Shown: positions 20,524 to 64,000 of the stretch, piece after piece
How positions within the stretch are numbered: the first letter of the stretch is position 1
Layout: each line of letters starts with the position of its first letter
Program-made: the position numbers and the translations under genes
NCBI GenBank assembly: GCA_051530055.1
Contig: CM121341.1
Coordinates: 13,246,784 to 13,310,783, forward strand
Length of the DNA stretch: 64,000 bases
Source of the DNA: Neoechinorhynchus agilis
Lineage: Eukaryota; Animalia; Acanthocephala
Direction: 5' to 3'
Notes under the pieces: model-generated
Told to the model about the DNA's origin: nothing
Seen by the model: only the letters and a program-made list of their open reading frames with translations
Database searches by the model: none

Positions 20524-21478
20524 TGCTGTGGAGCGCATGTGAATAAAGTAGAAACTTTGAGTGATATAAAGTACATTCGGAGATTTATAATGTTTGCAGA
20601 ATCTTTAATTTGCCAAATATTCAATCCTTTATGCAGAAAGTCTTGAACCTTTTTATTAACAATATTCATAAGACCGACCTAAACTTAGTTCGGATGGAAT
20701 CTGCAAGTGAAAAAACAAACTTATGAACCAAAGAATCATTTGTTAAGTGACTAAGAACTGTCGTTTTGAATCACGTAGAAAAAATATAAATGCAGAAAAT
20801 AGATCATTTCGATTCGATGAATGAATTAAAAAACCTTAATGCTCTGGTACGATTTTTTCAGATTTGTGAGTTTTGCAAAGTTTAAAATTCTGAAGTAAAC
20901 TGATGATGAATCCGACGAAGTTCGAAACGTCTTTAATAAATAATCATTTACCGGGTAAAGACCTAAATAACATTTTTGGTGAAAAAATAGGTTTGCTTAT
21001 ACTTTAATGCTGGAATGCAACTGTACATACCTTTGCCTCAGGGACTTTAATCGCTTTCAATCTTTGCCATCCTTGCCAATGTCTAGTTTATGACCCACTC
21101 AGTGTCTTGTCGAATTTAATGACTTTGGCTGATTTTAATGACCGTTAGACTCACATTTAAACTGAGGAATCGGTTCCAGAAACTGATCCCAATGCGCCAC
21201 TTTCATTCTCTTAAGCGTGCGCATTCGTTTTGCGATTTGCTCGTGTATGAAAGGACATCATGCCTGATCCACCAATTTTTATTTTCCCTTTACAAACGGA
21301 AACGTCTTAACTGCAAATACAAAAAAATCATGTTGTGATGTTTGCCAAACAATCAAGTTCTACGTTGTTTTGTACACAATGTTGAGCTCTAAACACACAA
21401 ATATGTATCGCTATCCGACCGATGTAATCCCATGTGCAGAAAAAGTTGATACGATTCAATTATTGTTCACGAAATTCA

Positions 21479-34947: not shown

Positions 34948-35351
34948 TCATCCGAAATTCAATTGTCCACTCGCGCAAAACGTCTTTAATCATAAAATCG
35001 ATTTTCTCATTTTTGTTCACTAAATACTGCTATGGTATCCTCTAACTTTAGACCTTTGCCGAACTAAAAATTTCGATTTTTACCAAGAACTGGGATCAAT
35101 ATTGAGTCATCGAAATATAATCGGTGCTCATTTTTCGATTATTTTGCTTGCACTACAACAGCCCTTTTCCAAATGTCTTTTTTCGAAAACAAAACTTGAT
35201 CATGCAACTGGAAAATCAAATAGTATTTCACAAGATTATTGCCAAAGAGATAAAAGACGCTCTCTAAAATGATATCGAATATTCACCTCGCAGAAAAGTA
35301 TCCAGCGCAATCGATTTTTGTGGATACAACATTGATAGCTGTAATTTGGCT

Positions 35352-36796: not shown

Positions 36797-39700
36797 TCAC
36801 TTATTTCTGTTTGGATTGATTGTACGCTCAAACACACACGAAATCCAGTTTCTATTGGAGAAATCCATTTCTGACAGTGGGAGGATGTCTGATCCAAGAA
36901 ATTTAGTGAATGGTGCGAAATGGTGATGCCAATGATCCTTGAGTTGATGAAGAGAACACGAGTAATACGAATCGCTAAGCGATGTTTTTCCCTCATTGAG
37001 CACTGATCGTTCATCGCAATGACAGTTGCATTCGAGTGCAGTGTGTGTGGAACATGAGGTTTCGTGATCAAGAGACAGTAATTCAGCTGCCAGTGGTTTG
37101 CTGTTGAATTTCGTCAAAATTTTTTGAACACTCGTGAAGAGATTTTCGCCATCGATAAGCTTATTTGCTTGCCGCTGTAACATCTTCTCTTCTATTGATC
37201 CGGTAAGTACCAATCGGTAGACAAATGTGTGGTTACATAAGTACGATTCTGACCTTGAAGCAAAGAAATAAAGACGACGAGCGCTTAAAAAAGAACTTAA
37301 GAACATTCTGATCACTTAGATGCACTTTAAAGGAAAAACACAAATCTTAAACGCGATTTCCATTGGACACCGCCTTTCAGCACTAGTCGCCGCCATTTGA
37401 AATCGTTAAAGCGAATTAATTTCAGCATACTCTCTGAAACTAATATATAGATTTTTAGGCAAAGGAATCGAAACGTTCAAATCAATGTTTAAATTTTTCT
37501 TGGCAGAAACTACAAAATTTTACATTAGCTTATTGATATTTTTATGTTATAGATTTTACTCCCACATGACTCCGTGGCTCAATTGGTAGAGCGTCTGACT
37601 CCAGATCAGAAGGTTGCGAGTTCAAGTCTCGTCGGGGTCAAAATGGGGCAAAAATAATTCCAAAATTCGGCCGTTTGAAGGGAAAGAATAGCGCTAATTA
37701 GTTTGTCCTTGCCTCCAGACTCTGCCGATCGCCTGTTCTTCATCTGCAGGATTCCACCCAGAATCAAATAGAATAATAATGTTGGCCGACGGAAGGTTAA
37801 TTCCAACGCCGCCCACTTTTGCACTAATCAACATCAACTGTTGATTCGACGTTTGATTAAAAGTATTGACAAGTTTCTGTCTATCAGAAACGGCTACGGT
37901 TCCGTCTATTCTATGAACAGTGACGTCTTTACCAAATGAGATCGACTGGATCGCGTCAAGACATTTTGTAAAATGACTCGCAACGACAATTCGACACTCC
38001 GGATCTCGTCTTAAACACTCTTTTACCATCCACTCCAAGACAGTCAATTTTCCACTTCGTACCAGATTGTCGCCCGTTCCACACAACAATCGCAAGTTCG
38101 ATATGCATTCAAGAACGTTAGAACAATCCCAACTGTCCAAGAAACCTTCAACCGTCTGGTCATATCTCACAGCTTGTGCTAAACTTGGCCGGCACATCAC
38201 TATCAATTGGGTACATGGAGGAAGTTTCCCTGAGGTTATTGGGAGATTTTTCTAGGCGCAAAAGAATGTTTGATCAATCAGAGAATGTCTTGGATTCTTG
38301 TCTTGGGGTTGAAAGATTCTTTCTTTTGGTAGTTTTGAAACCCCAGATTTAAATTCAATGATGATTTATTTCCGATATTTCACCTTTGATTGTTCCGACA
38401 TTATAATGATTTGTAATTGTTTCGACGTTAAAGCAACGAAGTAACTTGTGAAACAATGACAAACCTTGATAATGTCGGAATTAACGGAGGTAAATTATAT
38501 GGGAAACAAAGCATCAGTGAATTTAAATCCGGGGTTGAAAAACAACCAAAATAAAGTAATCAGAGAATGTTTCATTTCTTTAAGACCTAATCTCAGTGCG
38601 TAAAAATTGTTTTCTTATTCCAAAGATCTTCTCTAAAAGCACTTACCGGTTTTCAAGTTACAAATACGATTTTTTAGTCAACAAATAATGTTTTTCTCTA
38701 AGTATTGTGAACATCTCTTCAAAGGCTGATAATTTTCCATGAATTCTGCGAAGAAAAACCAGTTTTAAATAAAGGAAATAAAAATGGATATTTTGGCATT
38801 AGAGTTGGCCTATCGGCTGCGTTTCTTATAGGTTTAAATTTATCCAGATTTAAAATTACTTTTTTTCTTATTAGAAGAGACGAAAAGGGAACCTCTGAAT
38901 GTTTCGCGACTAGAACTGATACAAAATGAGAAGAAATTAATCGATTGTCCAGAAGAACCTATCTTGGATAAATTGATTTGATACCGTTTTCTTCTAAGCA
39001 AAAATGAATCGATAATAGTGCTGTCGTAAAAGCCATCCTGATCGTCGTTCATTTCCCGACGATTAAAGTCGTTTAGAAACTCATTTATCCGTCCAAGGCA
39101 TCCAGGCGAGCACAGATTTGCCATTGCATGAAATTCGGAGGGTTGATTTTGAAAAGGCGTTCCAGTAAGGAACACTCGTCTGGCGATATCTAATTCCTTG
39201 ATGGCAGCATAGGACTTTAGATTTTGTTTCTTTAATCTGTGAGCTTCATCGCACACCAACAGATCAAATTTAAGATTCTTGAAACTTTGAGCGGACGCGG
39301 TGAGTCGTTCGTAAGAAGTAATGATTATTGGATAACCGCGCAAACCACTAAATGCGGCGAGATCCTTTGGTTCCTTTATAATATAAATAAGACTTGGTCG
39401 ATTACCGAGCCATTTTCCCGATTCTACAAGCCAATTCTTCATCAAAGTACAAGGAACAACGATGAGCACTCGGGCACATATTGGATTCGGCTGACGGTTC
39501 AAAACATTGATCAATGATAAAGTCTGTGCGGTTTTGCCAAGACCGACGTCATCAGCCAAGATAACACCGGTAATTGATGAATCGTAAAGGCCAGTTACAC
39601 GAGTGTACATGAATACGACACCATGGAGTTGGTATGGATGTAAACGTCCAGATATTGACTTGTCTATTGATTCAAAATCAAACCTTCCAGATGGTTTGAT

Positions 39701-40769: not shown

Positions 40770-42430
40770 TATAAACACGTTTTATTAATTTAAGAAAAGA
40801 ACGATCCATACACTTGCCAGCATCTATCTTTGCTGAAGGTGTCTGGATGTCGGATGTTGAGGCAGATAGGTGGGACTTCTCTTTGAAGGAGTTTTACAGG
40901 GGAATGACCGATTGGAGTCTTTCCTTGTTCTCCGGTTGTTAAGGAAAGATTGGGCTTGGGGGAGGAAAGATTTTTGGTAGAGGGTGGTATGAGCGAGGGG
41001 GGATGAAAAAGGTTGGGGTTCTGGGCGTTTACGAGGGAAAAGTATTTAAAGATGAGGGAAGAAAATTGTGGAGGGGGTTGAAGAAGACGGAGGGCGTTTT
41101 TGGAGAAAATGGAGTGGAGGTGGGCGTCGAGGGGAGGGAGTGAAGTCCCGCATATTCTCGCTGCTCTCTTATGGAAGGTTTCGAGGGAATGGAGAGCATT
41201 GAAGGAGAGGGCGAGGAAAGTGGGGAAAATGTATGTAAGGATAGGAAGGATGGCAGAGAGATAAAAGTGGGCAAGGTGTTTAGGGGATACGTTGAGACGC
41301 CGGAGGAGTTTGAGGAGGTAAAGACGAGGGTTTGCTTTAGAGAGTGCAAACGAAATGTTCGCATCCCATTTAAGGTTTTCTTCGAAAGTCAGGCCAAGCA
41401 TTCGGAGAGGAGAGGAACGTTGGATGGGGAGAGCGAGAGGCGCGGGGATAAGATTGCGTTTGGAAATATGCGGGACAAGCTCAAAGGATTTGGATAAATT
41501 TAGGGAGAGGTTTAGGGTGGAGAGCGAGGAAATGAGATGGTTGAGCTCGTCCATGGTTGTGGAGAGGGAGAGAGGGAGATTCGATGGTAATGACTGTGAG
41601 GTCATCTGCATAAAGAAAATATTTGGTAGAGGGAGCGAGGGGATGGAGGTCATTTAGAAAAATGTCAAAGAAGAAAGGGGAAAGTACGGCGCCTTGGGGG
41701 ACCACTTTAAATATTGGTAGAGAAGAGGAGCAAGAAGTTTCACATTGGATATATTGTTTGCGATTGGAGAGGAAAGAGGAAATCCAAGCGAGTTGCCAGG
41801 TTGGGAGGCCAAAGGAAGCACATGATTGGAGGAGGAGGGAGTGATCTACCGACTCAAACGCCCTGGAAATATCCAGTTGCACGAGACGGACGGTTGATGC
41901 TGGACTGGAATCTAAGCTGCACACAAACGTATCGTAGATGCAGAGGAGGGCATCCGAACAAGAGTAATTGGGACGGAAAGCGAATTGGGAAGGGGAGATG
42001 TTTTTGAGGAAGAAGGGAAGTAGGCGGGTTTTAGAAAGGTGAGAGGATAGAGATGGGACGAAAGGATGTGGGGGTAATCGGCTTATCTTTTTTGGGTAGG
42101 GGGACGACACGGGCTTCCTCAAGATACGATGGGAAAGAGCCCAATAGAAAGCTAAGGTTCGTTATGTGCGTTAGAGGATCGATAAGTTCGGGGATGATGA
42201 GACGAATGGCCCGATTTGGGATAGTCGAATTAGGGGAAGAATGTGGGGGCAGGCGTTTAAGGATCTCTAGGATTTCGAGAGGGGAAACTAAGGAAGGGCA
42301 TGTATGAATGGGCGGGTCAAAAAGTGAGAAGGGAGGTTGGGAGGAGGACAGAGGTTTTTATTCATGGAGTTAAGGATTGAGAGGAGATCAGATTTGGGGA
42401 GAGATGCGAAGGGTGTGTATCTACCAAGAC
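40770..42430 (-). mobile_element. 5'-truncated, frameshifted CR1/L2-like LINE (RT region to 3' end); boundaries approximate
   Basis: GSFPSYLEEARVVPLPK, FRPISILS, SQFAFRP, QLDISRAFESVDH, VPQGAVLSP, YADD, LRMLGLTF..LKW, PRLYLLKLLRR across several frames; AATAAA near the 3' end. Confidence 0.9.
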
Positions 42431-43950: not shown

Positions 43951-44143
43951 TTTCGCAAGCTCAACCTAGAACGAAAGCGTTTCTACCAAAGAGGAAATTT
44001 TTAGTGCACAAAATATTTTTAATAGAAGCTTTTTAGCATATTTCTCCATTTCAAGCCCGTTTGCAAATTTGATCAGTTAGCGAAAATATGACGAAACATT
44101 CGTATCACTTGCTTTACAGATATTGGATTTTTCTAAGAGATTC

Positions 44144-45358
44144 ATGGTAGGAATGGGAAGACTGCCATTAAAAGAAATATCGTGGACATTTCGCACTGTT
44201 GTATCTATAACAGCCAGCAGGCGTTTTCTTAGTTCTATTTCACGGGTAGATTTCCTGTGCCAACAACAAACAAAGTCTACAGAAGTAGCTGCTGGACCAA
44301 AATCAAATCGAATAGTCCGAGCTTTGGCTGCTCTTCGTCCAGCTGAGCCACTAAAGCCGGTAAATATCTATCGACGAGATCCCGATGAAGATGACGCCGT
44401 TATCGAGATCGATTACTGCGGGATTTGCCATTTTGATATTCACAATGCAAAAAACGACTACAAAATGACACAATTTCCAGTTGTTCCGGGACACGAGATC
44501 GTCGGTCGGGTAATCGAACGTGGCAGCAATGTCTCCGATTTCGCAATTGGCGATAAGGTAGCCGTTGGAACCTACGTCGATACCTGCCGAGAGTGCCGAA
44601 TGTGCATAGCAGGGAGCGAGGAATACTGCAATAAACCCGGCGGGCTCATTATGACTTACAACAGTCCATATAAAAAAGACAAACGAAAGTGTACTTTGGG
44701 CGGATATAGCAGGCAGATCGTCGTGGATAAAAATTACATATTTCATTTACCGGAAAATCTTCCACCTGAACGAGCCGCTCCTCTACCTTGTGCCGGAATC
44801 ACTGTTTACATGCCGCTTAAGCGTTACAATGTTCGTAAAGGTTCCGAAGTTGCTGTAGCGGGTCTCGGAGGCCTCGGTCACATGGCGTTAAAACTTTCGG
44901 TAGCCATGGGTGCTCGATGTACGGTTTTAAGTCGGACTGATAAGAAAAAGGAGATGGCAACGAAGATGGGCGTTCATGAATTTGTAGTAACGTCTGACAA
45001 ATCAAAGCTTGCGTCCTATAAAAGACGATTCGACGTAATTGTCGATTCAATCAGTATGTACCATGACATAGACGAGCTACTTGGTCTTTTGAACGTAGGC
45101 GGAAGTTTAGTGTTGGTTGGATTGCCTCCTGAGCAGTATAAATTCTCCGCACGGTCTGTTGTACGAACAAGATCCTTTATAACAGGATCGACAATGGGAT
45201 CCTTGAAGGATATCCGGGAAATGTTTGAGCTTTGCTCGAAGCATGGAATCACCTGCGAAGTAGAGGTTATAAGACCCGATCAAGTCAATGAGGCGTACGA
45301 GAGGGTTCTTAAAGGTGATGTTCAGTTCAGATTCGTGATGGATATGAGCAAGCTTTGA
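44144..45358 (+). CDS. Intronless NADP(H)-dependent Zn alcohol dehydrogenase (CAD/YahK/AdhC-type MDR), copy 1, with N-terminal presequence
   Basis: YCGICH, VPGHE, structural Zn Cx2Cx2Cx7C, CAGIT, GLGGLGH, FRFVMD. First ATG at 44144 (the ORF track starts at a TTG). Confidence 0.93.
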   Translation: MVGMGRLPLKEISWTFRTVVSITASRRFLSSISRVDFLCQQQTKSTEVAAGPKSNRIVRALAALRPAEPLKPVNIYRRDPDEDDAVIEIDYCGICHFDIHNAKNDYKMTQFPVVPGHEIVGRVIERGSNVSDFAIGDKVAVGTYVDTCRECRMCIAGSEEYCNKPGGLIMTYNSPYKKDKRKCTLGGYSRQIVVDKNYIFHLPENLPPERAAPLPCAGITVYMPLKRYNVRKGSEVAVAGLGGLGHMALKLSVAMGARCTVLSRTDKKKEMATKMGVHEFVVTSDKSKLASYKRRFDVIVDSISMYHDIDELLGLLNVGGSLVLVGLPPEQYKFSARSVVRTRSFITGSTMGSLKDIREMFELCSKHGITCEVEVIRPDQVNEAYERVLKGDVQFRFVMDMSKL

Positions 45359-47049: not shown

Positions 47050-50000
47050 TAAAGGACATCGTTTAAACAAGAAGCGATGTATCGCACTGTTTACTAAATT
47101 TAACTATGCAATTTCGATATTTATTTTAGAAATAAGAAAAAAACGAAGCGCGTTCTCGATAAATCCCGCTTCTGAAGTACAACGAAACTGCGTAAAACAC
47201 TAAAATAGAAATAATTTCTTTCCACGGATAAAAAAAGGAAGATCGTCCAAACAAGAAGCGATGTATCGCACTCATTACAAAATTTAACCTTGTAATTTCG
47301 ATACTTATTTTCAAAATAAGAAAAAAAACGAAGCGCGTTCTCGACAAATCCCGCTTCTGAAGAACAACGAAACTGCGTAAAACACTAAAATAGAAATAAT
47401 CTCTATCCGCAGATAAAAAAAGAACATCGTCCAAACAAGAAGCGATGTATCGACCTGATTACAAAATTTAACTTTGTAATTTCGATACTTATTTTCAAAT
47501 AAGGAACAAACGAAGCGCGTTCTCGATAAATCCCGCTTCTTAAGTACAACGAAACTGCGTAAAGTACTAAAATAGAAATAATTCATTTCCAAAGATAAAA
47601 AAGAACATCGTCCAAACAAGAAGCGATGTATCGCACTGATTACAAAATTTAACTTTGTAATTTCGATACTTATTTTAAAACTAAGAAAAAAACGAAGCGC
47701 GTTCTCGATAAATCCAGCTTCTGAAGTGCAACGAAACTGCGTAAAAGACTAAAATAGAAATAATTTCTTTCCACTGATAAAAACGAACATCGTCAAAAGC
47801 AACAAGCGATGTATCGCACTGATTACAAAATTAAAAGCTTGCAATTTCGATACTTATTTTAAAAATGAGAAAAAACGAAGCGCGTTCTCGAATAAACCCC
47901 GCTTCTAAAGAACAACGAAACTGAGTAAAACACTAAAATAGAAATAATTTCTTTCCACAGATAGAAAAACGAACTTCGTCCAAACAAGTAGCGATGTATC
48001 GAACTTATTAAAAAATTTAACTTTGTAATTTCGATACTTATTTTAAAACTAAGAAAAAAACGAAGCGCGTTCTCGATAAATCCAGCTTCTGAAGTGCAAC
48101 GAAACTGCGTAAAACACTAAAATAGAAACAATTTCTTTCCACTGATAAAAACGAACATCGTCAAAAGCAACAAGCGATGTATCGCACTGATTACAAAATT
48201 AAAAGCTTGAAATTTCGATACTTATTTTAAAAATGAGAAAAAACGAAGCGCGTTCTCGAATAAACCCCGCTTCTAAAGAACAACGAAACTGAGTAAAACA
48301 CTAAAATAGAAATAATTTCTTTCCACAGATAGAAAAACGAACTTCGTCCAAACAAGAAGCGATGTATCGAACTTATTAAAAAATTTAACTTTGTAATTTC
48401 GATACTTATTTTAAAATAAGGAAAAAACGAAGCGCGTTCTCGAAAAATCCCGCTTCTGAAGTACAACGAAACTGCGTAAAACACTAAAATAGAAATAATT
48501 TCTTTCAACAGATAAAAAACGAACATCGTCCAAACAAGAAGCGATGTATCGCAATGATTACAAAATTTAACTTTGTAATTTCGATACTTATTTTAAAATC
48601 AGGAAAAAACGACGCGCATTCTCAATAAATTACGCTTCTGAAGAACAACGAAACTGCGTAAAAGAATAAAATAGAAATAATTTCTTTCAACAGATAAAAA
48701 CGAATATCGTCCAAACAAGAAGCGATGTATCGCACTGATTACAGAATTTAACTTTGTAGTTTCGATACTTATTTTAAAATAAGGAAAAAACGAAGCGCGT
48801 TCTCGATAAATCCCGCTTCTGAAGTACAACGAAACTACGTAAAACACTAAAATAGAAATAATTTCTTTCAAAGGATAAAAAACGAACATCGTCAAAAGAA
48901 AGAAGCGATTTATCGAACTGATTACAAAATTTCACTTTGTAATTTCGATACTTATTTTCAAAGTTAGAAAAAACGAAGCGCGTTCTCGATAAATCCCGCT
49001 TCTGAAGTACAACGAAACTGCGTAAAACACTAAAATATATATAAGTTCTTTCTTATAAATAACGAACACCGTAAAAAGCAAGGAGCGATGTATCGTACTC
49101 ATTACAAAATTTAACTTTGTAATTTCGATACTTATTTTCAAAATAAGAAAAAACGAAGCGCGTTCTCGACAAATCCCGCTTCTGAAGTACAACGAAACTG
49201 CGTAAAACACTAAAATATAAATAATTTCGTTCAACAGAATAAAAACGAACATCATTAAAAGCAAGAAGCGATGTATCGCACTGATTACAAAATTTAACTT
49301 TGTAATTTCGATACTTATTTTAAAATAAAGAAAAAAAGGATGCGCGTTCTCAAAAAATACCGCTTCTGAAGTACAACGAAACTGCGTAAAACACTAAAAT
49401 ATAAATAATTTCGTTTAACAGATAAAAAAACGGTCGTCGTCAAAACAAGAAGCGATGTATCGCACTTATCACAAAATTTAACTTTGTAATTTCGATACTA
49501 ATTTTCAAAATAAGAAAAAAACGGAGCGCGTTCTCGATAAATCCAGCTTCTGAAGTGCAACGAAACTGCGTAAAACACTAAAATATAAATAATTTCTTTC
49601 CACTGATAAAAGCGAACATCGTCAAAAGCAAGAAGCGATGTATCGCACGGATTGCAAAATTTAACTTTGTTATTTTTATACTTATTTTCAAAATAAGAAC
49701 AAAACGAAGCGCATTCTCGATAAATACCGCTTCTGAAGTACAACGAAACTGCGTAGAACACTAAAATAGAAATAATTCCTTTCAACAGATAAAAAACGAA
49801 CATCGCCCAAATAAGAAGCGATGTATCGCACTGATCACAAAATTTAACTTTGTAATTTTTATACTTATTTTCAAAATAAGAAAAAAACGAAGCGCGTTCT
49901 CGATAAATCCCGCTTCTGAAGTACAACGAAACTGCGTCAAAAACCAAATTAAAAATAATTTCTTTCCACAGATAAAAAACGAACATCGTCAAAACAAGAA

Positions 50001-52486
50001 ACGATGTATCGCACTGATTAAAAAATTTAACTTTGTAATTTTGTTACTTGTTTTCAAAATTAGAAAAAAACGAAGCGCGTTCTCGACAAATCCCGCTTCT
50101 GAAGTACAAAGAAACTGCGTAAAAGAATAAAATAGAAATAATTTCTTTCAACAGATAAAAACGAATATCGTCCAAACAAGAAGCGATGTATCGCACTGAT
50201 TACAGAATTTAACTTTGTAGTTTCGATACTTATTTTAAAACTAAGAAAAAAACGAAGCGCGTTCTCGATAAATCCAGCTTCTGAAGTGCAACGAAACTGC
50301 GTAAAACACTACAATAGAAATAATTTCTTTCCATGGATAAAAAACGAAGACGTCTAAACAAGAAGCGATCTATCGCAATCATTACAAATTTTTTTTTTGT
50401 TTTTTTGGGGTTTGTTATTTTACTTTTTAATTTCGATACTTATTTCAAAAATAAGAAAAAACCAAGCGCGTTCTCGATAAATCCCGCTTCCGAAGCACAA
50501 GAAAACTGCGTAAAACACTGAAATAGAAATAATTTCTTCCAACAGATAAAAACGAACATCGTCAAAAGAAAGAAGCGATTTATCGCACTGATTACAAAAT
50601 TTCACTTTGTAATTTCGATACTTATTTTCAAAGTAAGAAAAAAACGAAGCGCGTTCTCGATAAATCCCGCTTCTGAAGTAGAACGAAACTGCGTAAAACA
50701 CTAAAATATACATAAGTTCTTTCTTCTTATAAATAACGAACACCGTAAAAAGTAAGAAGCGATGTATCGCACTGATTACAAAATTTAACTTTGTAATTTT
50801 TATACTTATTTTCAAAATAAGAACAAAACGAAGCGCGTTCTCAATAAATCCCGCTTCTGAAGTACAACGAAACTGCGTCAAAAACCAAATTAAAAATAAT
50901 TTCTTTCCACAGATAAAAAACGAACATCGTCAAAACAAGAAACGATGTATCGCACTGATTAAAAAATTTAACTTTGTATTTTTGTTACTTGTTTTCAAAA
51001 TTAGAAAAAAACGAAGCGCGTTCTCGACAAATCCCGCTTCTGAAGTACAACGAAACTGCGTAAAACACTAAAATAGAAATAATTCCTTTCAACAGATAAA
51101 AAACGAACATCGTCCAAATAAGAAGCGATGTATCGCACTGATCACAAAATTTAACTTTGTAATTTTTATACTTATTTTCAAAATAAGAAAAAAACGAAGC
51201 GCGTTCTCGATAAATCCCGCTTCTGAAGTACAACGAAACTGCGTCAAAAACCAAATTAAAAATAATTTCTTTCCACAGATAAAAAACGAACATCGTCAAA
51301 ACAAGAAACGATGTATCGCACTGATTAAAAAATTTAACTTTGTAATTTTGTTACTTGTTTTCAAAATTAGAAAAAAACGAAGCGCGTTCTCGACAAATCC
51401 CGCTTCTGAAGTACAACGAAACTGCGTTAAACACTAAAATAGAAATAATTTCTTTCAACAGATAAAAAACGAACATCTTCCAAATAAGAGGCGATGTATC
51501 GAACTGATCACAAAATTTAACTTTGTAATTTTTATACTTATTTTCAAAATAAGAAAAAATCGATGAGCGTTCTCGACAAATACCGCTTCTGAAGTACGAC
51601 GAAACTGCGTAAAACACTAAAATAGAAATAATTTCTTTCCACTGATAAAAACGAACATCGTCAAAATCAAGAAGCGATGTATCGCACTGATTGCAAAATT
51701 TAACTTTGTAATTTTTACACTTTTTTTAAAAATAAGAAAAAAACGAAGCGCGTTCTCGATAAATCCCGCTTCTGAGGTACAACGAAACTGCGTTAAAAAC
51801 CAAAATAGAAATAATTTCTTTCAACAGATAAAAAACGAACATCCTCGAAACACGAAGCGATGTATCACACTGATTACAAAATTTAACTTTGTAATTTCGA
51901 TACTTATTTTCAAATTAAGAAAAAAACGAAGCGCGTTCTCGATAAATCCCGCTTCTGAAGTACAACGAAACTGCGTTAAACAGTAAAATAGAAATAATTT
52001 CTTTCCACTGATAAAAAACGAACATCGTCAAATGCAAGAAGCGATGTATCGAACTGATTACAAAATTTAACTTTTTAATTTCGATACTTATTTTAAAAAT
52101 AAGAAAAAAACGAAGCGCGTTCTCAATAAATCCCGCTTTTGAAGTAGAACGAAACTGCGTAAACACTAAAATAGAAATAAGTTCTTTCCACAGATAAAAA
52201 ACGAACATCGTCCAAGCAAGAAGCGTTGTATCGCACTGATTACAAAATTTAACTTTGTAATTTCGATACTTATTTTCAAAATAAGAAAAAAACGAAGCGC
52301 GTTCTGGATAAATCCCGCTTCTGAAATACAACGAAACTGCGTAAAACACTAAAATAGAAATAATTTCTTTCCACAGATAAAAAACGAACATCGTCCAAAC
52401 AAGAAGCGATGTATCGCACTGATTACAAAATTTAACTTTGTAATTTTGATACTTATTTTCAAAGTAAGAAAAAACGAAGCGCGTTC
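47050..52486. repeat. ~183-bp tandem satellite, about 30 copies
   Basis: AAACGAAGCGCGTTCTCGATAAATCCCGCTTCTGAAGTACAACGAAACTGCG... at 47141, 47326, 47508, 47690 and onward; diverged longer units flank it (46710-47050, 52487-52680). Confidence 0.98.
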
Positions 52487-52689
52487 ACATAAACATGCTT
52501 GAAAATCTTTAGAATAAAAAATTGTATTTTTGTATCGGTAATTTTTCTATTGCTTTATTAAAAAAGTTCTGTCTTCTTTTATAGACATATTTTAGTAGAT
52601 CAACGTGGTTGCAACTTTGATAACTCGTTCAGATCGAGAAATCCCGCTTCTGAAGTGGAACGAAAAGGCGTAAAGCACTACACACTTCT

Positions 52690-54250
52690 TATAGCTTTCT
52701 CTCACACTACAGAGGTCGCTTTGCCAGCTTGTCCTCAAAAATCAAACTTCATCCGATCGTCTTAGGTCCTCCATCGCACTATCTTTCCATCTTTTTTCGG
52801 CCTTCCCCGTTTCATCTTCCCCTTGACCTCAGTGCGTCCGGCGCTCTTTATGCAATCGTCTTCTGCTCGTTAATCGACATGATGGAACCATCGCATTCTT
52901 CTTTTGGCTATCACTTCCTGCACCGGCTCGACGTCGAACATTTTTCTAATCTCGGCATTGGGCTTTTTATCTCTGCGTGTTACTCTAGCTGACCATCTCA
53001 GCATCTTCATTTCATTTACAATCAATCTCTGTACGTCCTCCTATTTTGTAGCCCAAATCTCCGCTGCGTATACCATTACATGTCGTACCACTGCTTTGTA
53101 CACGCGCCCTTTGAGCTTGTTCAGGAGACGTATATCGCACAGGATGCCCGTTACTCTTTTTCAGTTATTCCACCGACATTGTACCCTCTGCCCAATTTCA
53201 GGTGCAAGTTCACAGGGCACGTTAACTCCCTGCATGCCTACTTCGCTTGGTCCCATATCGTTTTGCTCCTGCTAATTTTCAGGCCGTTGCTTTCTAAGCA
53301 CTGTCGCCAACTCTCCAACATTTTCTCGAGTGTCACCGAGTCCCTTGCCGTGAGCAGCAGATCATCTGCAAATAATATCGTCCAGGGCGCGTTCATCTCT
53401 GTATTTCCTAGGGCATCGATGACTGTCGCGAACAAGAATGGGCTAAGCACTGAACCTTGATGTAGACCAATGGACACCTGAAAATAATCTGTCCTTCCTT
53501 TTTGACATCGCACGCTGGTGTAACACTTTTCATACATCGTTTTGATCGTGATCACATAATGCTCTGGACAGTTTCTCTTGCCCAAGCAGGCCCAAATCAA
53601 GTCTCGGAACACGGTGTCATATGCTTTCTCCTGGTCGATGAAGACACTATGCAACGAACGATGCTTCTCATTAAATTTTTCATACAGCTGTCTTAGCACG
53701 AAGATCACGTCGATTGTGCTTCTACCTGGCATAAAGCCGCGTTGGTATTCACTGATTTGGATATCCTCCCTAATCCTATTGTCAACCATCCGCTCCCACA
53801 ATTTCATTGTGTGGGACATCAGCTTGATGCCACGCTAATTGCTACACTGCAAAATATTTCCTTTACCCTTAAAAATCGGCACAAGTATGCTTCTTTGCCA
53901 TGCTGACGGAATCGTTTGCTTTGCATCTGTCTTTCGAAAAAGTTTAGTAAGCAGTTTGACTTCGAATGCGTCCAAACATTTCCATAACTCAATCGGGATG
54001 TTATCTGGACCGGTACTCTTTCTTACCAATCTTCATCTTTCTGATCTTCGATGCGACGTCATTGCAAGAATACGGTCTAGCCATATTGATATTCAGCTGT
54101 GCTTGTTAAATAGGCAATCTTTCATTCTCTGTGTTCAGGCGGGATCTGAAGTACTCCTTCCATCTGTTCAAAATATCGTTGTTTTGATCGAGCATACTAC
54201 CCTCACTGTCGTTGATCATTTTGTGCCGTACGATGTCCCTTGACCTCATC
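52690..54250 (-). mobile_element. 5'-truncated, disrupted RTE-clade LINE; boundaries approximate
   Basis: LNRWKEYF, KSTGPDNIP, SHTMKLWERMV, GFMPGRST, FIDQEKAYDTV, LHQGSVLSP, FADD, GKMKRGRPKK; frameshifts and stops. Confidence 0.92.
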
Positions 54251-55899: not shown

Positions 55900-57099
55900 A
55901 TGCTAAGACTGGCATTTACTCACATTTCTCGTATTCTTCGCGTGTCGACAACGCCTCTGAATATGCGATCTTTCAGTCCTATGTCTCCGTCTCGACTCTT
56001 CTCGTATCATCATATGCCGCCAGAACTAGCCGCTGGACCAAAATCAAATCGAATAGTCCGAGCTTTGGCTGCTCTTCGTCCAGCTGAGCCACTAAAGCCG
56101 GTAAATATCTATCGACGAGATCCCGATGAAGATGATGTCGTTATCGAGATCGATTACTGCGGGATTTGCCATAGCGATATCCACAATGCCAGAAATGAAT
56201 GGAATACTACACAATTTCCAGTTGTTCCGGGACACGAGATCGTCGGTCGGGTAATCGAACGTGGCAGCAATGTCTCCGATTTCGCAATTGGCGATAAGGT
56301 AGCCGTTGGAACCTACGTCGATACCTGCCGAGAGTGCCGAATGTGCAAAGCAGGGAGCGAGGAATACTGCGATAAACCCGGCGGGCTCATTATGACTTAC
56401 AACAGTCCATATTGGAAAGATGCTGAAGTTCCTACCTTGGGCGGATATAGCAGGCAGATAGTCGTGGATAAAAATTACATATTTCATTTACCGGAAAATC
56501 TTCCACCTGAACGAGCCGCTCCTCTGCTTTGTGCCGGAATCACCGTTTTCATGCCTCTGAAGCGTTACAATGTTCGTGAAGGTTCCGAAGTCGCTGTAGC
56601 GGGTCTCGGAGGCCTCGGTCACATGGCGTTAAAACTTTCGGTAGCCATGGGTGCTCGATGTACGGTTTTAAGTCGGACTGATAAGAAAAAGGAGATGGCA
56701 ACGAAGATGGGCGCTCATGATTACGTGATTACTACCGATAAATCAAAACTGTTATCCTACCAAAGAAGATACGATGTTATTATTGATGCCATTAGTGCGT
56801 ACCATGACGTTAATGAACTACTTGGTCTTTTAAATGTAGGCGGAAATTTAGTGTTAGTTGGATTGCCTCCTGAGCAGTTGAAGTTTACGGCTAGATCCGT
56901 AATTCGAACTAAGTGTTCCATAACTGGATCCGCAATTGGGTCTCGCAAAGAAACGAAGGAAATGCTTGAGCTTTGTTCAAAGCATGGAATCACCTGCGAA
57001 GTAGAGGTTATAAGACCCGATCAAGTAAATGAAGCTTATGATCGAGCATTGAAAGGCGATGTTCAATTTAGATTCGTGATGGATATGAGCAAGCTTTGA
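55900..57099 (+). CDS. Intronless NADP(H)-dependent Zn alcohol dehydrogenase (CAD/YahK/AdhC-type), copy 2, with mitochondrial-type presequence
   Basis: CGICHSDIH, GHE, Cx2Cx2Cx7C, APLLCAGIT, GLGGLGH; N-terminus MLRLAFTHISRILRVS..SRLFS is Arg/Ser-rich with no acidic residues. Confidence 0.95.
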   Translation: MLRLAFTHISRILRVSTTPLNMRSFSPMSPSRLFSYHHMPPELAAGPKSNRIVRALAALRPAEPLKPVNIYRRDPDEDDVVIEIDYCGICHSDIHNARNEWNTTQFPVVPGHEIVGRVIERGSNVSDFAIGDKVAVGTYVDTCRECRMCKAGSEEYCDKPGGLIMTYNSPYWKDAEVPTLGGYSRQIVVDKNYIFHLPENLPPERAAPLLCAGITVFMPLKRYNVREGSEVAVAGLGGLGHMALKLSVAMGARCTVLSRTDKKKEMATKMGAHDYVITTDKSKLLSYQRRYDVIIDAISAYHDVNELLGLLNVGGNLVLVGLPPEQLKFTARSVIRTKCSITGSAIGSRKETKEMLELCSKHGITCEVEVIRPDQVNEAYDRALKGDVQFRFVMDMSKL

Positions 57100-57791: not shown

Positions 57792-58990
57792 ATTTGTTGA
57801 TAGGAGAGATAAATGAAATTAATATTTTATTGGATATTTCGATCCACTATCTCGGGCAGCCCGTTAGCTCCTGTGCTTGCTGAGCTGCATATACGGCACT
57901 GGGAGGACGAACATTTGTCGTCGATACAGGGTGTGAATATCTGATTCAGATATGTGGACGACACGTTCTTGTTGATTAACCCTTCAGAGACTAATATGGA
58001 TCGCCTTAAACATGAACTGAATGGAAGGGACGACAATATTCAGTGGACGATCGAGGAGGAGGACCATGGTAAGTTTCCGTTCCTGGATGTGTGGATATAC
58101 CGATTAGCCAGTGGAAACTACACGACCAGCGTGTACCGAAAGAGAGGTATACCAGTGGGCCTTGTGCCATGGACATCTGCCCAACCTCGCAAATACAAAA
58201 TTTCGAGGATTAGGTCACTCATCCATCGTGCTCTTACACATTGTAGCAACGCTAAGTTGTGTAACGAGGAGATTGATTACCTGAAGTGCATATCAGGTCG
58301 ATATGGTTATCCTCTCCATCTTGTCGAACGGTGCATTCGGAATGTGCGTCACACCTTCAATGGGGAGACAAAGTCTAAAAAGGAAGAGATCTATGTTGAA
58401 CTGCCATTCCCTGATGATCATTCTTATCTTGCTATGGAGCGCATCATAAAATCAGGATGTGAGGCCAAGATAGTAAATGTATACACAAAGAGGGGACGCA
58501 CTCTACACGGATTGATATGTCCTAAGAATGGCCAACAGTCATCTGGTGCGGTCTACAAAATTCCGTGTTCCGGTTGCGAACAGGTCTATGTGGGGCAGAC
58601 CAACAATTTCACCCGACGGATGAAGGAGCACGAATCATCAGTTGTTCGCAACACGGATATTAGTTCCGCAGTGGTGGCCCGTGCAAAAAACACAGGGCAC
58701 ACTGTTGATTTTAGTGCCGCTACAACACTAGTTTGCAATGGTCGGCGTTTCGAACGTATTATCATCGAATCCTTATATATAAATAGGTTCTAAACGTTCG
58801 AGGGCAATAAACCTGATTTCAAATTAAGGATGCGACTCCCACCGGATGTTATGTGACGCGTGAATTGAGAATCCCTGTGTATGTGTTTTAGATTGCTGAA
58901 GAAGATCCGAGATAGTGGATCGAAATATCCAATAAAATCTTAATTTCATTTATTTTCTCCTATCAACAAATAACAATGAATTATCTTTTC
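57792..58990 (+). mobile_element. 5'-truncated Penelope-like element with inverted pseudo-LTR and 14-bp TSD
   Basis: RT GSPLAP..(TGA)FRYVDD, FPFLDV, YRK; GIY-YIG GAVYKIPCSGCEQVYVGQT. 57792-57855 is the reverse complement of 58907-58971; AATATTACATTAAT at 57778-57791 and 58991-59004. Confidence 0.93.
58892..58933 (+). ncRNA. Minimal type I hammerhead ribozyme in the PLE 3' pseudo-LTR
   Basis: ATTG-CTGAAGA-A-GATCC(GAGATAGT)GGATC-GAAA-T-ATC^-CAAT: stem I ATTG/CAAT, 5-bp stem II, loopless palindromic stem III ATAT, predicted cut after 58929. Confidence 0.85.
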
Positions 58991-59887
58991 AATATTACAT
59001 TAATTTTATACCTGCTTAAAAGTGTAGTATCTCAAACCTTAAAAGCTTTCCCTGAATTTAGAAGCATTTCGCCTTTTCGCATAGACACGATGTACTTTTT
59101 CGTATGAGATCTCCAAATTTGTACCACCGTGGAAGCGCTCGCACTGAAATTCTGCACGACCATCCGTGGATAATGAAAAAGGGCACCATCGCAATTTTAA
59201 TGGTATTGCATTCCTTCGAATATGGTTCGCTTAGTTCGAAACTTCATCTACAAATGTTGCATAGGTTAGTGGATATTACTGCACTTACGTCTATGTCGCT
59301 TTTCTAACAATAGATCGCAATTTTGAGAAAAATAACATTATGTGGATGTGATATATAATGCTAGATTTAGTCAATCATGTTGTGAACTGCAGGATTACTC
59401 AATCTGTATAAAAAATCTCAATTTGGTAGGCATCACATTGCCGACAGTTAATTATGAAGATCTTTATAATAATATAATAATAACACGTTTATTCTTTTTC
59501 CCCCTTTAATTTTGTTTGACAATCGGCGCACTGATTTATTCGTCTTTTGTTTTTCCAAGTTATCGCCGCTTAACGGCCTCTTCAGGGATCTACAAATTTT
59601 GAAGTGGAGAAGTGAGAATCATAGCAGTGACATAGCGGATAACTCGTCCCGTATAAATGCTGGAATTACCTTGTTCTTAAGACATCTCTTAAGGAATGGG
59701 ATTCGCTGCTCTCGACTCTTCAAACTTTCCAACATCGCCATGTAGTTTATTACAGCGGTGAGTATCGGTTTGTCCAAACGATTGTTGACAATCCTATGGA
59801 TCACCGCGTGATTATTCAGGCGCATTGTTTAATCTTTTAATCCACTTTAATTTTGTTTGACAATCGGCGAACTGATTTATCAGTCTT

Positions 59888-59936
59888 TTGTTTTCCCAAG
59901 CTTTCGCCGTTTAACGGCCTCTTCAGGGATCTACAA
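59888..59936 (-). ncRNA. Type I hammerhead ribozyme, intact core (array unit, minus arm)
   Basis: TTGT-AGA-TCC-CTGAAGA-G-GCCGT(TAA)ACGGC-GAAA-G-CTT^-GGG-AAA-ACAA on the minus strand. Confidence 0.8.
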
Positions 59937-62403
59937 TGGTGAAGTAGAGAAGTGAGAATCATAACAGTGACATAGCGGATAACTCGTCCCGTATAAATGC
60001 TGGAACTACCTTGTTCTTAAGACATCTCTTAAGGAATGGGATTCGCTGCTCTCGACTCTTCAAACTTTCCAGCATCGCCATGTAGTTTATTACAGCGGTG
60101 AGTATCGGTTTGTCCAACCGCGTGTTGATAATCCTATGGATCTCCGCTTGATTATCCAGACGCATTGTTTAATCTTTTCCCCTTTAATTTTGTTTCACAA
60201 TCGGCGCACTGATTAATTAGTCTTTTGTTTTTAAAAGCTTTTGCCGTTCAACGGATTCTTCAGCGATCTACAATGGTGAATTGGAGAAGTGAGAATCATA
60301 ACAGTGACATAGCGGATCGCCCGTCCCGTATAAATGCTGGAATTACCTTGTTCTTAAGACATCTCTTAAGGAATAGGATTCGCTGCTCTCGACTCTTCAA
60401 CCTTTCGAACATCGCCATGTAGTTTATTACAGCGGTGAGTATCGGTTTGTCCAAACGATTGTTGACAATCCTATGGATCACCGCGTGATTATTCAGGCGC
60501 ATTGTTTAATCTTTTAATCCACTTTAATTTTGTTTGACAATCGGCGAACTGATTTATCAGTCTTTTGTTTTTCCAAGCTTTCGACGTTTAACGGCCTCTT
60601 CAGGGATCTACAAATTTTGAAGTGAAGTGAGAATCATAGCAGTGACATAGCGGATAACTCGTCCCGTATAAATGCTGGAATTACCTTGTTCTTAAGACAT
60701 CTCTTAAGGAATGGGATTCGCTGCTCTCGACGCTTCAAACTTTCCAACATCGCCATGTAGTTTATTACAGCGGTGAGTATCGGTTTGTCTAACCACATGT
60801 TGATAATCCAATGGATCACCGCTTGATTATTCAGGCGCATTGTTTAATCTTTTTTCCCCTTTAATTTTGTTTGACAATCGGTGAACTGATTTATCAGTCT
60901 TTTGTTTTTCCAAGCGTTCGCCGTTTAACGGCCTCTTCAGGGATCTACAATGGCGAAGTGGAGAAGTGAGAATTATAACAGTGACATAGCCGATAGCTCG
61001 TCCCGTATAAATGCTGGAATAACCTTGATCTTAAGACATCTCTTAAGGAATAGGATTCGCTGCTCTCGACTCTTCAAACTTTCCAACATCGCTATGTAGT
61101 TTATTACAGCGGTGAGTATCGGTTTGTCCAATCACATGTTAATAATCCAATGGATTACCGGTTGATTATTCAGGCGCATTGTTTAATCTTTGCCCCCTTA
61201 AATTTTGTTTGACAATTTGCGCACTTATTTATTAGTCTTTTGTTTTTCAAAGCTTTCGCCGTTTAACGGCGTCTTCAGGGATCTACAATGGTGAAGTGGA
61301 GAAGTGAGAATCATAACAGTGACATAGCGGATAGCTCGTCCCGTATAAATGCTGGAACTACCTTGTTCTTAAGACATCTCTTAAGGAATAGGATTCGCTG
61401 CTCTCGACTCTTCAACCTTTCCAATATCGCCATCTAGTTTATTACAGCGGTGAGTATCAGTTTGTCTAACCACATGTTGATAACACTATGGATCACCGCT
61501 TGATTATTCAGGCGCATTGTTTAATCTTTTTTTTCTCCTTTAATTTTGTTTGACAATTTGCGCACTGATTTATTAGTCTTTTGTTTTTTCCAAGCTTTCG
61601 CCGTTTAACGGCCGAAGAGTCGAGAGCAGCGAATCCTATTCCTTAAGAGATGTCTTAAGAACTAGGTAGTTCCAGCATTTATACGGGACGAGCTATCCGC
61701 TATGTCACTGTTATGATTCTCACTTCTCCAATTCACCATTGTAGATCCCTGAAGACGCCGTTAAACGGCGAAAGCTTTGAAAAACAAAAGACTAATAAAT
61801 AAGTGCGCAAATTGTCAAACAAAATTTAAGGGGGCAAAGATTAAACAATGCGCCTGAATAATCAACCGGTGATCCATTGGATTATTAACATGTGATTGGA
61901 CAAACCGATACTAACCGCTGTAATAAACTACATAGCGATGTTGGAAAGTTTGAAGAGTCGAGAGCAGCGAATCCCATTCCTTAAGAGATGTCTTAAGAAC
62001 AAGGTAATTCCAGCATTTATACGGGACGAGCTATCCGCTATGTTACTGTTATGATTCTCACTTCACCATTGTAGATCCCTGAAGACGCCGTTAAACGGCG
62101 AAAGTTTTGAAAAACAAAAGACTTATAAATAAGTGCGCAAATTGTCAAACAAAATTTAAGGGGGCAAAGATTAAACAATGCGCGATAATCAACCGGTGAT
62201 CCATTGGATTATTAACATGTGGTTGGACAAACCGATACTCACCGCTGTAATAAACTACATAGCGATGTTGGAAAGTTTGAAGAGTCGAGAGCAGCGAATC
62301 CTATTCCTTAAGAGATGTCTTAAGAATAAGGTAATTCCAGCATTTATACGGGACGAGCTATCCGCAATGTCACTGTTATGATTGTCACTTCTCCACTTCA
62401 CCA

Positions 62404-62452
62404 TTGTAGATCCCTGAAGAGGCCGTTAAACGGCGAAAGCTTGGAAAAACAA
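62404..62452 (+). ncRNA. Type I hammerhead ribozyme, intact core (array unit)
   Basis: TTGT-AGA-TCC-CTGAAGA-G-GCCGT(TAA)ACGGC-GAAA-G-CTT^-GGA-AAA-ACAA; predicted cut after 62442. Confidence 0.82.
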
Positions 62453-62512
62453 AAGACTTATAAATAAGTGCGCAAATTGTCAAACAAAATTTAAGGGGAC
62501 AAAGATTAAACA

Positions 62513-62719
62513 ATGCGCCTGAATAATCAACCGGTGATCCATTGGATTATTAACATGTGGTTGGACAAACCGATACTCACCGCTGTAATAAACTACATAG
62601 CGATGTTGGAAAGTTTGAAGAGTCGAGAGCAGCGAATCCTATTCCTTAAGAGATGTCTTAAGAATAAGGTAATTCCAGCATTTATACGGGACGAGCTATC
62701 CGCAATGTCACTGTTATGA
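62513..62719 (+). CDS. Representative 68-aa micro-ORF of the 338-bp unit (resembles a PLE ORF N-terminus)
   Basis: Real ATG; nine long open copies in the array. FLKRCLKNKVIPAF recalls the FLxRCxxxxxIP motif near PLE ORF starts (from memory). Translation unproven. Confidence 0.4.
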   Translation: MRLNNQPVIHWIINMWLDKPILTAVINYIAMLESLKSREQRILFLKRCLKNKVIPAFIRDELSAMSLL

Positions 62720-62741
62720 TTGTCACTTCTCCACTTCACCA

Positions 62742-62790
62742 TTGTAGATCCCTGAAGAGGCCGTTAAACGGCGAAAGCTTGGAAAAACAA
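62742..62790 (+). ncRNA. Type I hammerhead ribozyme, intact core (array unit)
   Basis: Identical to the 62404 copy; predicted cut after 62780, exactly 338 nt downstream of the previous cut. Confidence 0.82.
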
Positions 62791-63418
62791 AAGACTGACA
62801 AATCACTTCACCGATTGTCAAACAAAATTAAAGGGGAAAAAAGATTAAACAATGCGCCTGAATAGTCAAGCGGTGATCCATTGGATTGTCAACAATCGTT
62901 TGGACAAACCGATACTCACCGCTGTAATAAACTACATGGCGATGTTCGAAAGGTTGAAGAGTCGAGAGCAGCGAATCCTATTCCTTAAGAGATGTCTTAA
63001 GAACAAGGTAATTCCAGCATTTATACGGGCGGGCGATCCGCTATGTATCTGTTATGATTCTCACTTCTCCAATTCACCATTGTAGATCGCTGAAGAATCC
63101 GTTGAACGGCAAAAGCTTGGAAAAACAAAAGACTAATTAATCAGTGCGCCGATTGTCAAACAAAATTAAAGGGGGAAAAAGATTAAACAATGCGTCTGGA
63201 TAATCAAGCGGAGATCCATAGGATTATCAACACGCGGTTGGACAAACCGATACTCACCGCGGTAATAAACTACATGGCGATGTTGGAAAGTTTGAAGAGT
63301 CGAGAGCGACGAATCCCATTCCTTAAGAGATGTCTTAAGAACAAGGTAGTTCCAGCATTTATACGGGACGAGTTATCCGCTATGTCACTGTTATGATTTT
63401 CACTTCTCTACTTCACCA

Positions 63419-63467
63419 TTGTAGATCCCTGAAGAGGCCGTTAAACGGCGAAAGCTTGGAAAAACAA
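63419..63467 (+). ncRNA. Type I hammerhead ribozyme, intact core (array unit)
   Basis: Same motif, C3 at 63429. Confidence 0.8.
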
Positions 63468-64000
63468 AACTGATAAATCAGTTCGCCGATTGTCAAACAA
63501 AATTAAAGTGGATTAAAAGATTAAACAATGCGCCTGAATAATCAAGCGGAGATCCATAGGATTATCAACACGCGGTTGGACAAACCGATACTCACCGCTG
63601 TAATAAACTACATGGCGATGTTGGAAAGTTTGAAGAGTCGAGAGCAGCGAATCCCATTCCTTAAGAGATGTCTTAAGAACAAGGTAATTCCAGCATTTAT
63701 ACGGGACGAGTTATCCGCTATGTCACTGCTATGATTCTCACTTCTCCACTTCAAAATTTGTAGATCCCTGAAGAGGCCGTTGAACGGCAAAAGCTTTTAA
63801 AAACAAAAGACTAATTAATCAGTGCGCCGATTGTGAAACAAAATTAAAGGGGGGAAAAGATTAAACAATTCGTCTGGATAATCAAGCGGAGATCCATAGG
63901 ATTATCAACACGCGGTTGGACAAACCGATACTCACCGCTGTAATAAACTACATGGCGATGCTGGAAAGTTTGAAGAGTCGAGAGCAGCGAATCCCATTCC

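Follow-up and report, generated by a model that had tools for sequence, protein, structure and literature searches.

What kind of element is the 338-bp tandem repeat at the right-hand end of the window examined here, a 64,000-nt stretch of the genome of the acanthocephalan Neoechinorhynchus agilis (assembly GCA_051530055.1, contig CM121341.1; positions count from the first letter of this stretch), and is its short open reading frame (ORF) a gene? The original prediction, made from the letters alone, read 59490-64000 as a retrozyme-like array in which hammerhead ribozymes (HHRs) bracket a complete micro-ORF. Our analysis makes it probable that the array is a terminal module, of the pseudo-long-terminal-repeat (pLTR) type, of a Penelope-like element (PLE) that grew by amplification into a retrozyme-like satellite, later underwent an inverted duplication and is now decaying neutrally. 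Judged by the homologies set out below, each unit is a composite of four PLE pieces, i.e. the last ~50 nt of the 3' untranslated region (3'UTR), a minimal type I hammerhead, a 5' leader of ~70 nt and the first ~59 codons of the polyprotein.

Two mirrored arms of a 338-bp repeat

Tandem Repeats Finder resolved the 338-bp period into two abutting arrays, 59487-61613 (6.3 copies, 90% matches) and 61614-64000 (7.1 copies, 92% matches), whose consensus units are reverse complements of one another. Repeats of this length do run throughout the interval that had been described as a single array, but they form two mirrored arms of opposite orientation, an inversion that had escaped mention. For comparison the array was cut into units set in a common orientation, designated M6-M1 then Mj (- strand) and Pj then P1-P7 (+ strand). 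The left arm (59487-61613), in which the sense strand of both HHR and ORF is the - strand, consists of M6 (truncated to 109 nt), M5-M1 and the partial Mj, and holds an intact HHR with C3 at 59926; the right arm (61614-64000; sense strand +) consists of the partial Pj and of P1-P7, the last cut by the window end, with intact HHRs whose C3 residues lie at 62414, 62752 and 63429. Only 11 units are full length, a point that the original prediction did not bring out. The GC content of the unit is 0.40, and this is the single array of its family within the window.

At the inversion junction (61613/61614) the left arm breaks within the HHR (…CTGAAGA|GGCC…) and the right arm begins within the ORF at GAAGAGTCGAG. 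The word GAAGAG, shared by the HHR core and ORF codons 35-36, lies next to both breakpoints; when a microhomology explanation of the junction was sought, this word gave no consistent template-switch geometry. Outwards from the junction the arms mirror one another unit by unit, the identity matrix giving 98.4% for Mj and Pj, 97.3% for M1 and P1, 96.7% for M3 and P4, 97.6% for M4 and P5 and 97.9% for M5 and P6. Because mirror partners are 97-98% identical while neighbouring units differ from each other by ~8-10%, we infer that the array had become heterogeneous before an inverted duplication at the DNA level copied it, and that 2-3% divergence followed. There are hints of a two-unit periodicity (P5 and P7, 95.1%; M3 and M5, 96.5%), and P2 and P3, at 98.5% identity, have the look of a local duplication that came afterwards.

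The left end of the array adjoins AT-rich simple sequence (…ATAATAATATAATAATAACAC) at 59470-59486, where the terminal unit M6 stops 2 nt short of the ORF's ATG, an end that is neither the hammerhead cleavage site nor the junction between codon 59 and the tail. Rfam models score the hairpin of the inverted arms (61336-61691) as plant microRNA precursors (MIR5048, 54.5 bits against a threshold of 160; MIR7533, 32.3 bits against a threshold of 230), matches that we rejected as artefacts of the long hairpin which the palindromic arms form.

A hammerhead motif of the PLE class

A Hamming scan with the 49-nt motif recovered 13 copies at no more than seven mismatches, all inside the array, six on the - and seven on the + strand; a fourteenth is truncated at the inversion junction. 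Intact copies start at 62404, 62742 and 63419 (+) and at 59936 (-); copies at 60613(-), 61288(-) and 61739(+) carry one stem mismatch, and the six at 59595(-), 60273(-), 60950(-), 62069(+), 63080(+) and 63758(+) carry core or helix III changes, which reproduces copy by copy the tally of four, three and six given in the original prediction. In the reference copy (62404-62452, +) helix I is formed by TTGT/ACAA (4 bp) and TCC/GGA (3 bp) on either side of a 3x3 internal loop; the core CUGAAGA is followed by an extra G, by a 5-bp helix II closed by a UAA loop (GCCGU-UAA-ACGGC) and by GAAA, and helix III is the loopless palindrome AGCU, with U17 at 62442. Folded alone, the 49 nt adopt helices I and II as proposed, at a minimum free energy (MFE) of -11.3 kcal/mol. 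In 4/13 copies both catalytic boxes (C3U4G5A6N7G8A9 and G12A13A14), A15.1-U16.1 and H17 are present (CUGAAGA … GAAA-GC-U-U), and the remainder have point changes.

Cervera & de la Peña (2014) defined the minimal hammerhead (min-HHR) in the pLTRs of PLEs by its two catalytic boxes, one nucleotide left unpaired between A9 and G10.1, the pairing of G10.1 with C11.1, palindromic positions 15.2-16.2 in place of a true helix III, and a helix II that is long where helix I is short (PMC4209133). Such ribozymes act as dimers, show low activity in vitro, include a U3-A8 covariant of the core and occur as motif pairs on opposite strands (PMC4209133). Since every published sequence hallmark is found in the array motif, we assign it, on its sequence, to this class. 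The likeness extends from the CUGANGA and GAAA boxes, the unpaired A9/G10.1 nucleotide, the G10.1-C11.1 pair and the palindromic, loopless 15.2-16.2 positions to the longer helix II (5 bp) and the short helix I with its ill-defined loop, and also to the setting, i.e. a PLE terminus just before the ORF, copies on opposite strands and high heterogeneity among genomic copies (PMC4209133). The extra nucleotide after A9, which had been listed as a caveat, is instead a diagnostic trait of PLE min-HHRs (PMC4209133). The array differs from these in that its motif sits in a 13-copy series of 338-bp units devoid of the reverse transcriptase-endonuclease (RT-EN) body, rather than flanking an ORF of ~3 kb, and in that H17 is U (a CUU site).

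A strict descriptor was then applied, demanding the core followed by 0-1 extra nucleotide, a helix II free of mismatches and no shorter than 4 bp, the GAAA box, paired 15.2-16.2 positions, U16.1, H17 and a helix I of at least 3 bp. It matched four times in the array and twice elsewhere in the window, and gave 0 matches on both strands of 200 Markov-randomised sequences of 59.4 kb; as the descriptor found none in these and four in the array, the motif match goes beyond chance.

Composition of the unit

The spacing from U17 at 62442 to U17 at 62780 predicts a 338-nt product with a 70-nt leader and a 68-codon ORF, so the arithmetic of the earlier proposal was correct. The leader (62443-62512, +) is the equivalent of a PLE 5'UTR, and leaders of similar length separate HHR and ATG at three loci introduced below (L001, L002 and L003). 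Within the micro-ORF (62513-62719, stop codon 62717-62719), codons 1 to ~59 (62513-62688, +) share homology with PLE polyprotein N-termini (MRLNN…FLKRC…IPAFIRD), and the tail that follows (~53 nt, 62689-62741, +), which resembles the last part of the PLE 3'UTR in L002, provides the final ~9 codons together with the stop. In a local alignment with L002 the homology of the tail begins at ~62689 (codon ~59), which is also where protein homology to PLE N-termini ends.

Neither a Pfam search nor a word-indexed homology search with the 68-aa product gave a match; an exhaustive HMMER search recovered 10 proteins, amongst them P0012 (729 aa), P0013 (568 aa) and P0009 (448 aa). The PLE "DKG" motif (SDKGGEF) is present in P0012 and P0013, P0009 has ADKTAEF, and P0012 also has the YVDD box of reverse transcriptase (RT). 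The micro-ORF matches the first ~60 residues of P0012 and P0013, and in P0009 it is residues 66-129, from an internal Met onwards, that match; the alignment covers residues 1 to ~60, with L45, R47, C48 and P55 invariant inside the motif FLKRC…P.F. Searched in the opposite direction, PLE N-termini matched the array units by tblastn at E~1e-8 to 1e-9.

The units keep only these ~59 N-terminal codons and have neither RT nor GIY-YIG sequence; with these and the rest of the N-terminal domain absent, the unit is non-autonomous. Alignment thus places the micro-ORF as a truncated PLE N-terminus fused to codons derived from a 3'UTR, which we read as a by-product of that fusion with no standing as an independent gene. 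The exhaustive search found no homologue of the short form as such, the short matches being fragments from gene models or ORF calls: P0004 and P0011 come from a chromosome assembly, where each belongs to a decayed solo copy, and P0008 from a metagenome contig of 656 bp.

The same layout at other PLE loci

In L001, the contig that encodes P0012, TTGATAA-T-GACGC-TAG-GCGTC-GAAA-CGTC|A stands ~69 nt before the ATG and corresponds to the published U3-A8 covariant. L003, a marine-metagenome PLE encoding P0013 and an RT/GIY-YIG ORF, has CTGATGA-T-GACGT-CAA-ACGTC-GAAA-CGTT|CC upstream of its ATG, and in both loci the HHR lies 65-70 nt from the ATG. The HHR, leader and first ~14 codons of L003 are repeated past the 3' end of the ORF, and so form a pLTR.

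L002, on a chromosome of assembly GCA_051530055.1, carries a decayed copy of nearly the window motif (TTGTAGATTCCTGAAGAAGCCATAAGACGGTAAAAGCTCGG), followed by a leader and then by an ORF that is 53% identical to the micro-ORF. On its - strand, RT/GIY-YIG coding remnants (3388-2807, tblastn) are followed after ~220 nt by …CACTTCACAACTCCACGTTCCT-TTGTAGATTCCTGAAGAAGCC… and then by the same leader; by sequence, this segment belongs to the family of the array's tail and HHR, at the place expected of a PLE 3' pLTR. Two decayed relics of a sister family of the module, 75-82% identical to the L002 copy, occur in the window itself, both on the + strand: a decayed solo module at 28942-29078 (75%), in which an HHR remnant with a U3…A8 core (at 28944), a leader and an ATG precede the ORF stump MRLENQIVLHK…, and an HHR-leader-ATG module at 35174-35239. 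The motif keeps the same position relative to a PLE ATG at no fewer than four loci. These homologies, the HHR-leader-ATG layout and the tail and HHR found in L002 past the GIY-YIG end bear out the proposal that the hammerhead is of PLE type and that the array is PLE-derived and non-autonomous.

Comparison across PLE lineages supports the hammerhead fold through covariation, as judged from a six-motif alignment from which L004 and L006, with only degenerate HHR-like sequence upstream of their ATGs, were left out. After A9, array copies have G, C or A as the extra nucleotide, whereas it is U in L001, L003 and at 20900 of the window, and A at 58896 of the window and in L005; the helix III palindrome is AGCU in the array, ACGU in L001, L003 and at 20900, and AUAU at 58896 and in L005. 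The 10.1-11.1 pair is G-C in five of six sequences and G-U in one decayed copy, 10.2-11.2 is C-G or A-U, and 10.5-11.5 is U-A or C-G. Overall, 89.4% of cells are paired, against 28-39% with the 3' partners slid; in 6/11 pairs both sides have changed, with U3-A8 replacing C3-G8 and, at 15.2-16.2, C-G replacing G-C amongst the examples, and the observed covariation score was reached by 0/500 shuffles.

Two identical min-HHRs (CUGAAGA-A-GGCC…GGCC-GAAA-AUAUC) stand head to head in L005, at 1478 (-) and 1533 (+), ~55 bp apart, an inverted arrangement of PLE ends like that described in PMC4209133.

Neutral decay of ribozyme and reading frame

The original prediction took the micro-ORF to be a complete coding unit that a circular RNA may carry. 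In addition to its composition from a truncated N-terminus and UTR codons, the frame bears no clear codon constraint. Amongst 47 distinct ORF variants across units, 17 are synonymous (~12 expected), 27 are non-synonymous and three are stops; since 20 of the 47 would be synonymous in one antisense frame, the synonymous signal is not specific to the ORF. Given the number of substitutions in each copy, 8.0 open ORFs would be expected by chance amongst the 12 complete copies, and eight were observed.

The ribozyme behaves likewise. Its substitution rate is 0.046, compared with 0.051 for the rest of the unit, and nine of the 13 copies are damaged, the four intact ones comparing with 1.6-3.3 expected for 26-40 critical positions. 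Neither ribozyme nor ORF departs from neutral decay within the array. The 338-nt unit RNA has an MFE of -70.0 kcal/mol, compared with -68.7 ± 9.1 kcal/mol for randomised sequences (z = -0.14), and is accordingly no more structured than random, whereas retrozyme circles have been described as "highly self-paired" (PMC7229834).

Origin of the array and alternative explanations

What is directly observed comprises the composition of the unit, its PLE homologies, the class of the hammerhead, the mirrored arms and the state of decay; the history that we favour would connect these as follows. A PLE RT would have made a founding copy holding the terminal module alone, either as a severely truncated partial-tandem insertion or by an end-to-end template jump, and the junction of codon ~59 with the 3'UTR tail would be the expected outcome of such a jump or of an internal deletion. 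The array would then have grown mainly at the DNA level, unequal exchange giving rise to two-unit higher-order repeats, before its duplication in inverted orientation. The RNAs of PLEs exceed one unit in length and have redundant termini, and 5' truncation affects most insertions (PMC8557442; 10.64898/2026.07.22.740005); inverted PLE arrangements are also known (PMC8557442; PMC4209133). The mechanism resembles that of Li et al., who proposed that PLE terminal repeats seed retrozyme tandem arrays which expand by unequal crossover, a model concerned with vertebrate retrozymes, invertebrates being, as they state, outside their study (10.64898/2026.07.22.740005). If the array were transcribed, only the adjacent intact ribozymes of P3 and P4 could release a 338-nt RNA; cleavage would need two motifs paired as a dimer via the AAGCUU palindrome, as in other min-HHRs, and a 338-nt circle would be predicted to join …GCUU to GGAAAAAC….

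Several observations count against this account or temper it. No full-length parent PLE of the array's exact family was found in the collections searched, and the parent is accordingly represented by relatives, with identities of ~70-80% in DNA or ~40-55% in protein. The alignment of the tail is short and noisy, and supportive only. No Rfam hammerhead model, the search that the original prediction had put forward as a check, matched at gathering thresholds (whole window) or at E<=10 (the 4.6 kb array and 91-96-nt stretches), although published min-HHRs were themselves identified by RNAmotif descriptors and not by covariance models (PMC4209133, PMC8557442). The predicted CUU cleavage site is weak, min-HHRs cleave poorly in vitro (PMC4209133), and self-cleavage here is a prediction from sequence. 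ORF variants show a mild excess at third positions (23/47) as well as of synonymous changes, which leaves some room for weak purifying selection on the micro-ORF peptide. Lastly, the right end of the array lies beyond the window (past 64000), and with it the sequence from which target-site duplications and the mode of insertion would be read.

An alternative that we consider unlikely differs from our favoured explanation in its founding step only, and the window alone does not discriminate between the two. It holds that one truncated PLE insertion, a solo pLTR with an internal deletion, was amplified purely at the DNA level by slippage and unequal crossover, with no spread through RNA and no role for the ribozyme. 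The two-unit periodicity and the mirrored inverted duplication would suit such a history, as would the neutral decay, the presence of but one array of the family in the window and the three unrelated satellites that share the same 64 kb. The ends of the unit, however, coincide with PLE landmarks (the 3'UTR tail and the early ORF), as expected of a reverse-transcribed product of pLTR type, and since related solo modules are dispersed in the window (28942, 35174) and in L002, such modules do move.

It is improbable that the locus is an active non-LTR retrozyme, i.e. that it is transcribed, that its hammerheads cut the RNA into 338-nt monomers and that a host ligase closes these into a circle serving both as template for a PLE RT and as messenger RNA for a 68-aa protein. 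Although the intact ribozymes of P3 and P4, 338 nt apart, do bracket an open ORF, damage has reached nine of 13 ribozymes at the background substitution rate and the count of open ORFs is that of neutral expectation; although there is a slight synonymous excess, an antisense frame scores better; and whilst the N-terminal PLE motif kept in the ORF is the conserved one, the C-terminus and stop come from UTR-derived sequence and no homologue of the short form was found beyond fragments of gene models and ORF calls. The tandem 338-bp, ~40% GC architecture fits non-LTR retrozymes (PMC7229834), but the unit RNA is not highly self-paired, and its HHR is of the low-activity minimal PLE type rather than a canonical type I with loop-loop contacts. 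More specifically, the few intact units (P3, P4, P6 and M5) might be transcribed and, through dimeric min-HHRs, give a 338-nt circle that is translated into the conserved 59-residue N-terminal peptide of PLEs (FLKRC…P.F) with a short novel tail, acting on PLE ribonucleoprotein assembly, e.g. as a trans-dominant modulator; this we regard as very improbable, and if it were true the array would be a coding retrozyme. Finally, that an ordinary satellite merely resembles a ribozyme by chance, as might be argued from the silence of the Rfam models, the weak CUU triplet and a helix III that cannot form in the monomer, is effectively refuted by the randomisation and the cross-lineage covariation, with the fixed position of the motif relative to PLE ATGs and the full set of published min-HHR hallmarks also opposed to it.

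Relation to known hammerhead repeats

The array shares with metazoan non-LTR retrozymes (Cervera & de la Peña 2020, PMC7229834; Li et al. 2026, 10.64898/2026.07.22.740005) its low-GC tandem repeats in the 150-450-bp range, the single type I HHR in each unit, the want of LTRs, primer-binding site and polypurine tract, and coexistence with PLEs, as well as the proposed origin in PLE terminal repeats followed by satellite-like expansion. It differs from them in its minimal, PLE-type HHR, theirs being a canonical type I with contacts between loops 1 and 2 (PMC7229834), and in the folding of the unit RNA; its unit also retains a recognisable piece of PLE coding sequence, and it is known here from sequence alone. 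Because two retrozyme features fail (the loop-loop HHR and the highly self-paired RNA), we file the array as a PLE-derived retrozyme-like satellite.

The terminal redundancy of PLE insertions described by Craig et al. (2021, PMC8557442) likewise covers the HHR, leader and ORF start, as seen in L003, and their pLTR and partial-tandem insertions also display the short 'tail', the tandem and inverted arrangements and the 5'-truncated copies (here 57855-58793). Whereas a canonical pLTR occurs twice, flanking the ORF (PMC8557442), the module of the array is repeated at least 13 times head to tail, and its unit contains a novel junction at which codon ~59 is fused to the 3'UTR tail.

In newt satellite 2 and Schistosoma Sm-alpha, as here, ~330-bp tandem units carry a type I HHR with a weak helix III that needs a dimer. 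Both have canonical HHRs with tertiary loops, and their transcription and cleavage are documented. The HHR of the array is minimal by comparison, and the likeness is one of architecture, not drawn from sequence comparison.

Neighbouring elements and the rest of the window

A 5'-truncated PLE of a different family lies beside the array at 57855-58793 (+), comprising the C-terminal part of RT and a GIY-YIG domain (Pfam E = 9.9e-5) and homologous to the RT/EN ORF of L003 (E = 1e-7). Its own intact min-HHR (58896-58943, +; CUGAAGA-A-GAUCCG…UGGAUC-GAAA-UAUC, helix III AUAU) begins ~100 nt past the stop codon. As it has no DNA similarity to the array, this element was rejected as the array's parent; its HHR also differs in helix II and in the AUAU of helix III. 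A short ORF at 58976-59107 (+; 43 aa, MNYLF…LKAFPEFRS…), ~35 nt past this HHR, weakly resembles the FLKRC…P.F motif and may, by its sequence, represent the start of the adjacent PLE's ORF inside its downstream pLTR. A solo intact min-HHR at 20900-20945 (+; CUGAUGA-U-GAAU…GUUC-GAAA-CGUC|U) has ACGU as its helix III palindrome and GUC as its site; downstream of it no start of a PLE ORF can be recognised, and it stands ~600 bp upstream of an ERGIC-53-like lectin ORF (21519-22844).

Three other satellites occupy the window, with units of 196 bp (1-15663, about 15.6 kb, with a 392-bp higher-order period), 297 bp (24233-25740, five copies) and 183 bp (47056-52493, about 30 copies, with long spurious ORFs on the - strand); none contains a match to the min-HHR descriptor, and all are unrelated to the 338-bp array. 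Two intron-less, paralogous zinc-type alcohol dehydrogenase genes (44123-45358 and 55900-57099, both + and both ending in -SKL) flank the 183-bp satellite and retroelement debris, and the pair suggests a segmental duplication. Reverse transcriptase fragments separate from the PLEs, at 40790-42122 and 53238-53819 (-; Pfam RVT_1, E = 3e-24 and 2e-26), are by their appearance probably non-LTR elements. A tRNA-Trp gene (anticodon CCA; 37567-37641, +) is flanked by exons of a SNF2/RAD54-like helicase gene that runs along the - strand. Amongst named sequences the window's DnaJA2 gene is closest to that of another acanthocephalan, Pomphorhynchus laevis (57% identity), with bdelloid rotifers at ~49%.

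Implications

Two cautions follow for the study of such repeats, namely that ORFs within them can be relics of the parent element and that Rfam covariance models miss PLE min-HHRs entirely. The array itself provides a clean invertebrate case of a retrozyme-like hammerhead satellite built from a PLE terminal module, in which the PLE link is legible both in non-coding similarity and in a retained, alignable stump of the polyprotein. It thereby supports, outside the vertebrates, a recent proposal under which animal retrozymes derive from PLEs as non-autonomous elements.

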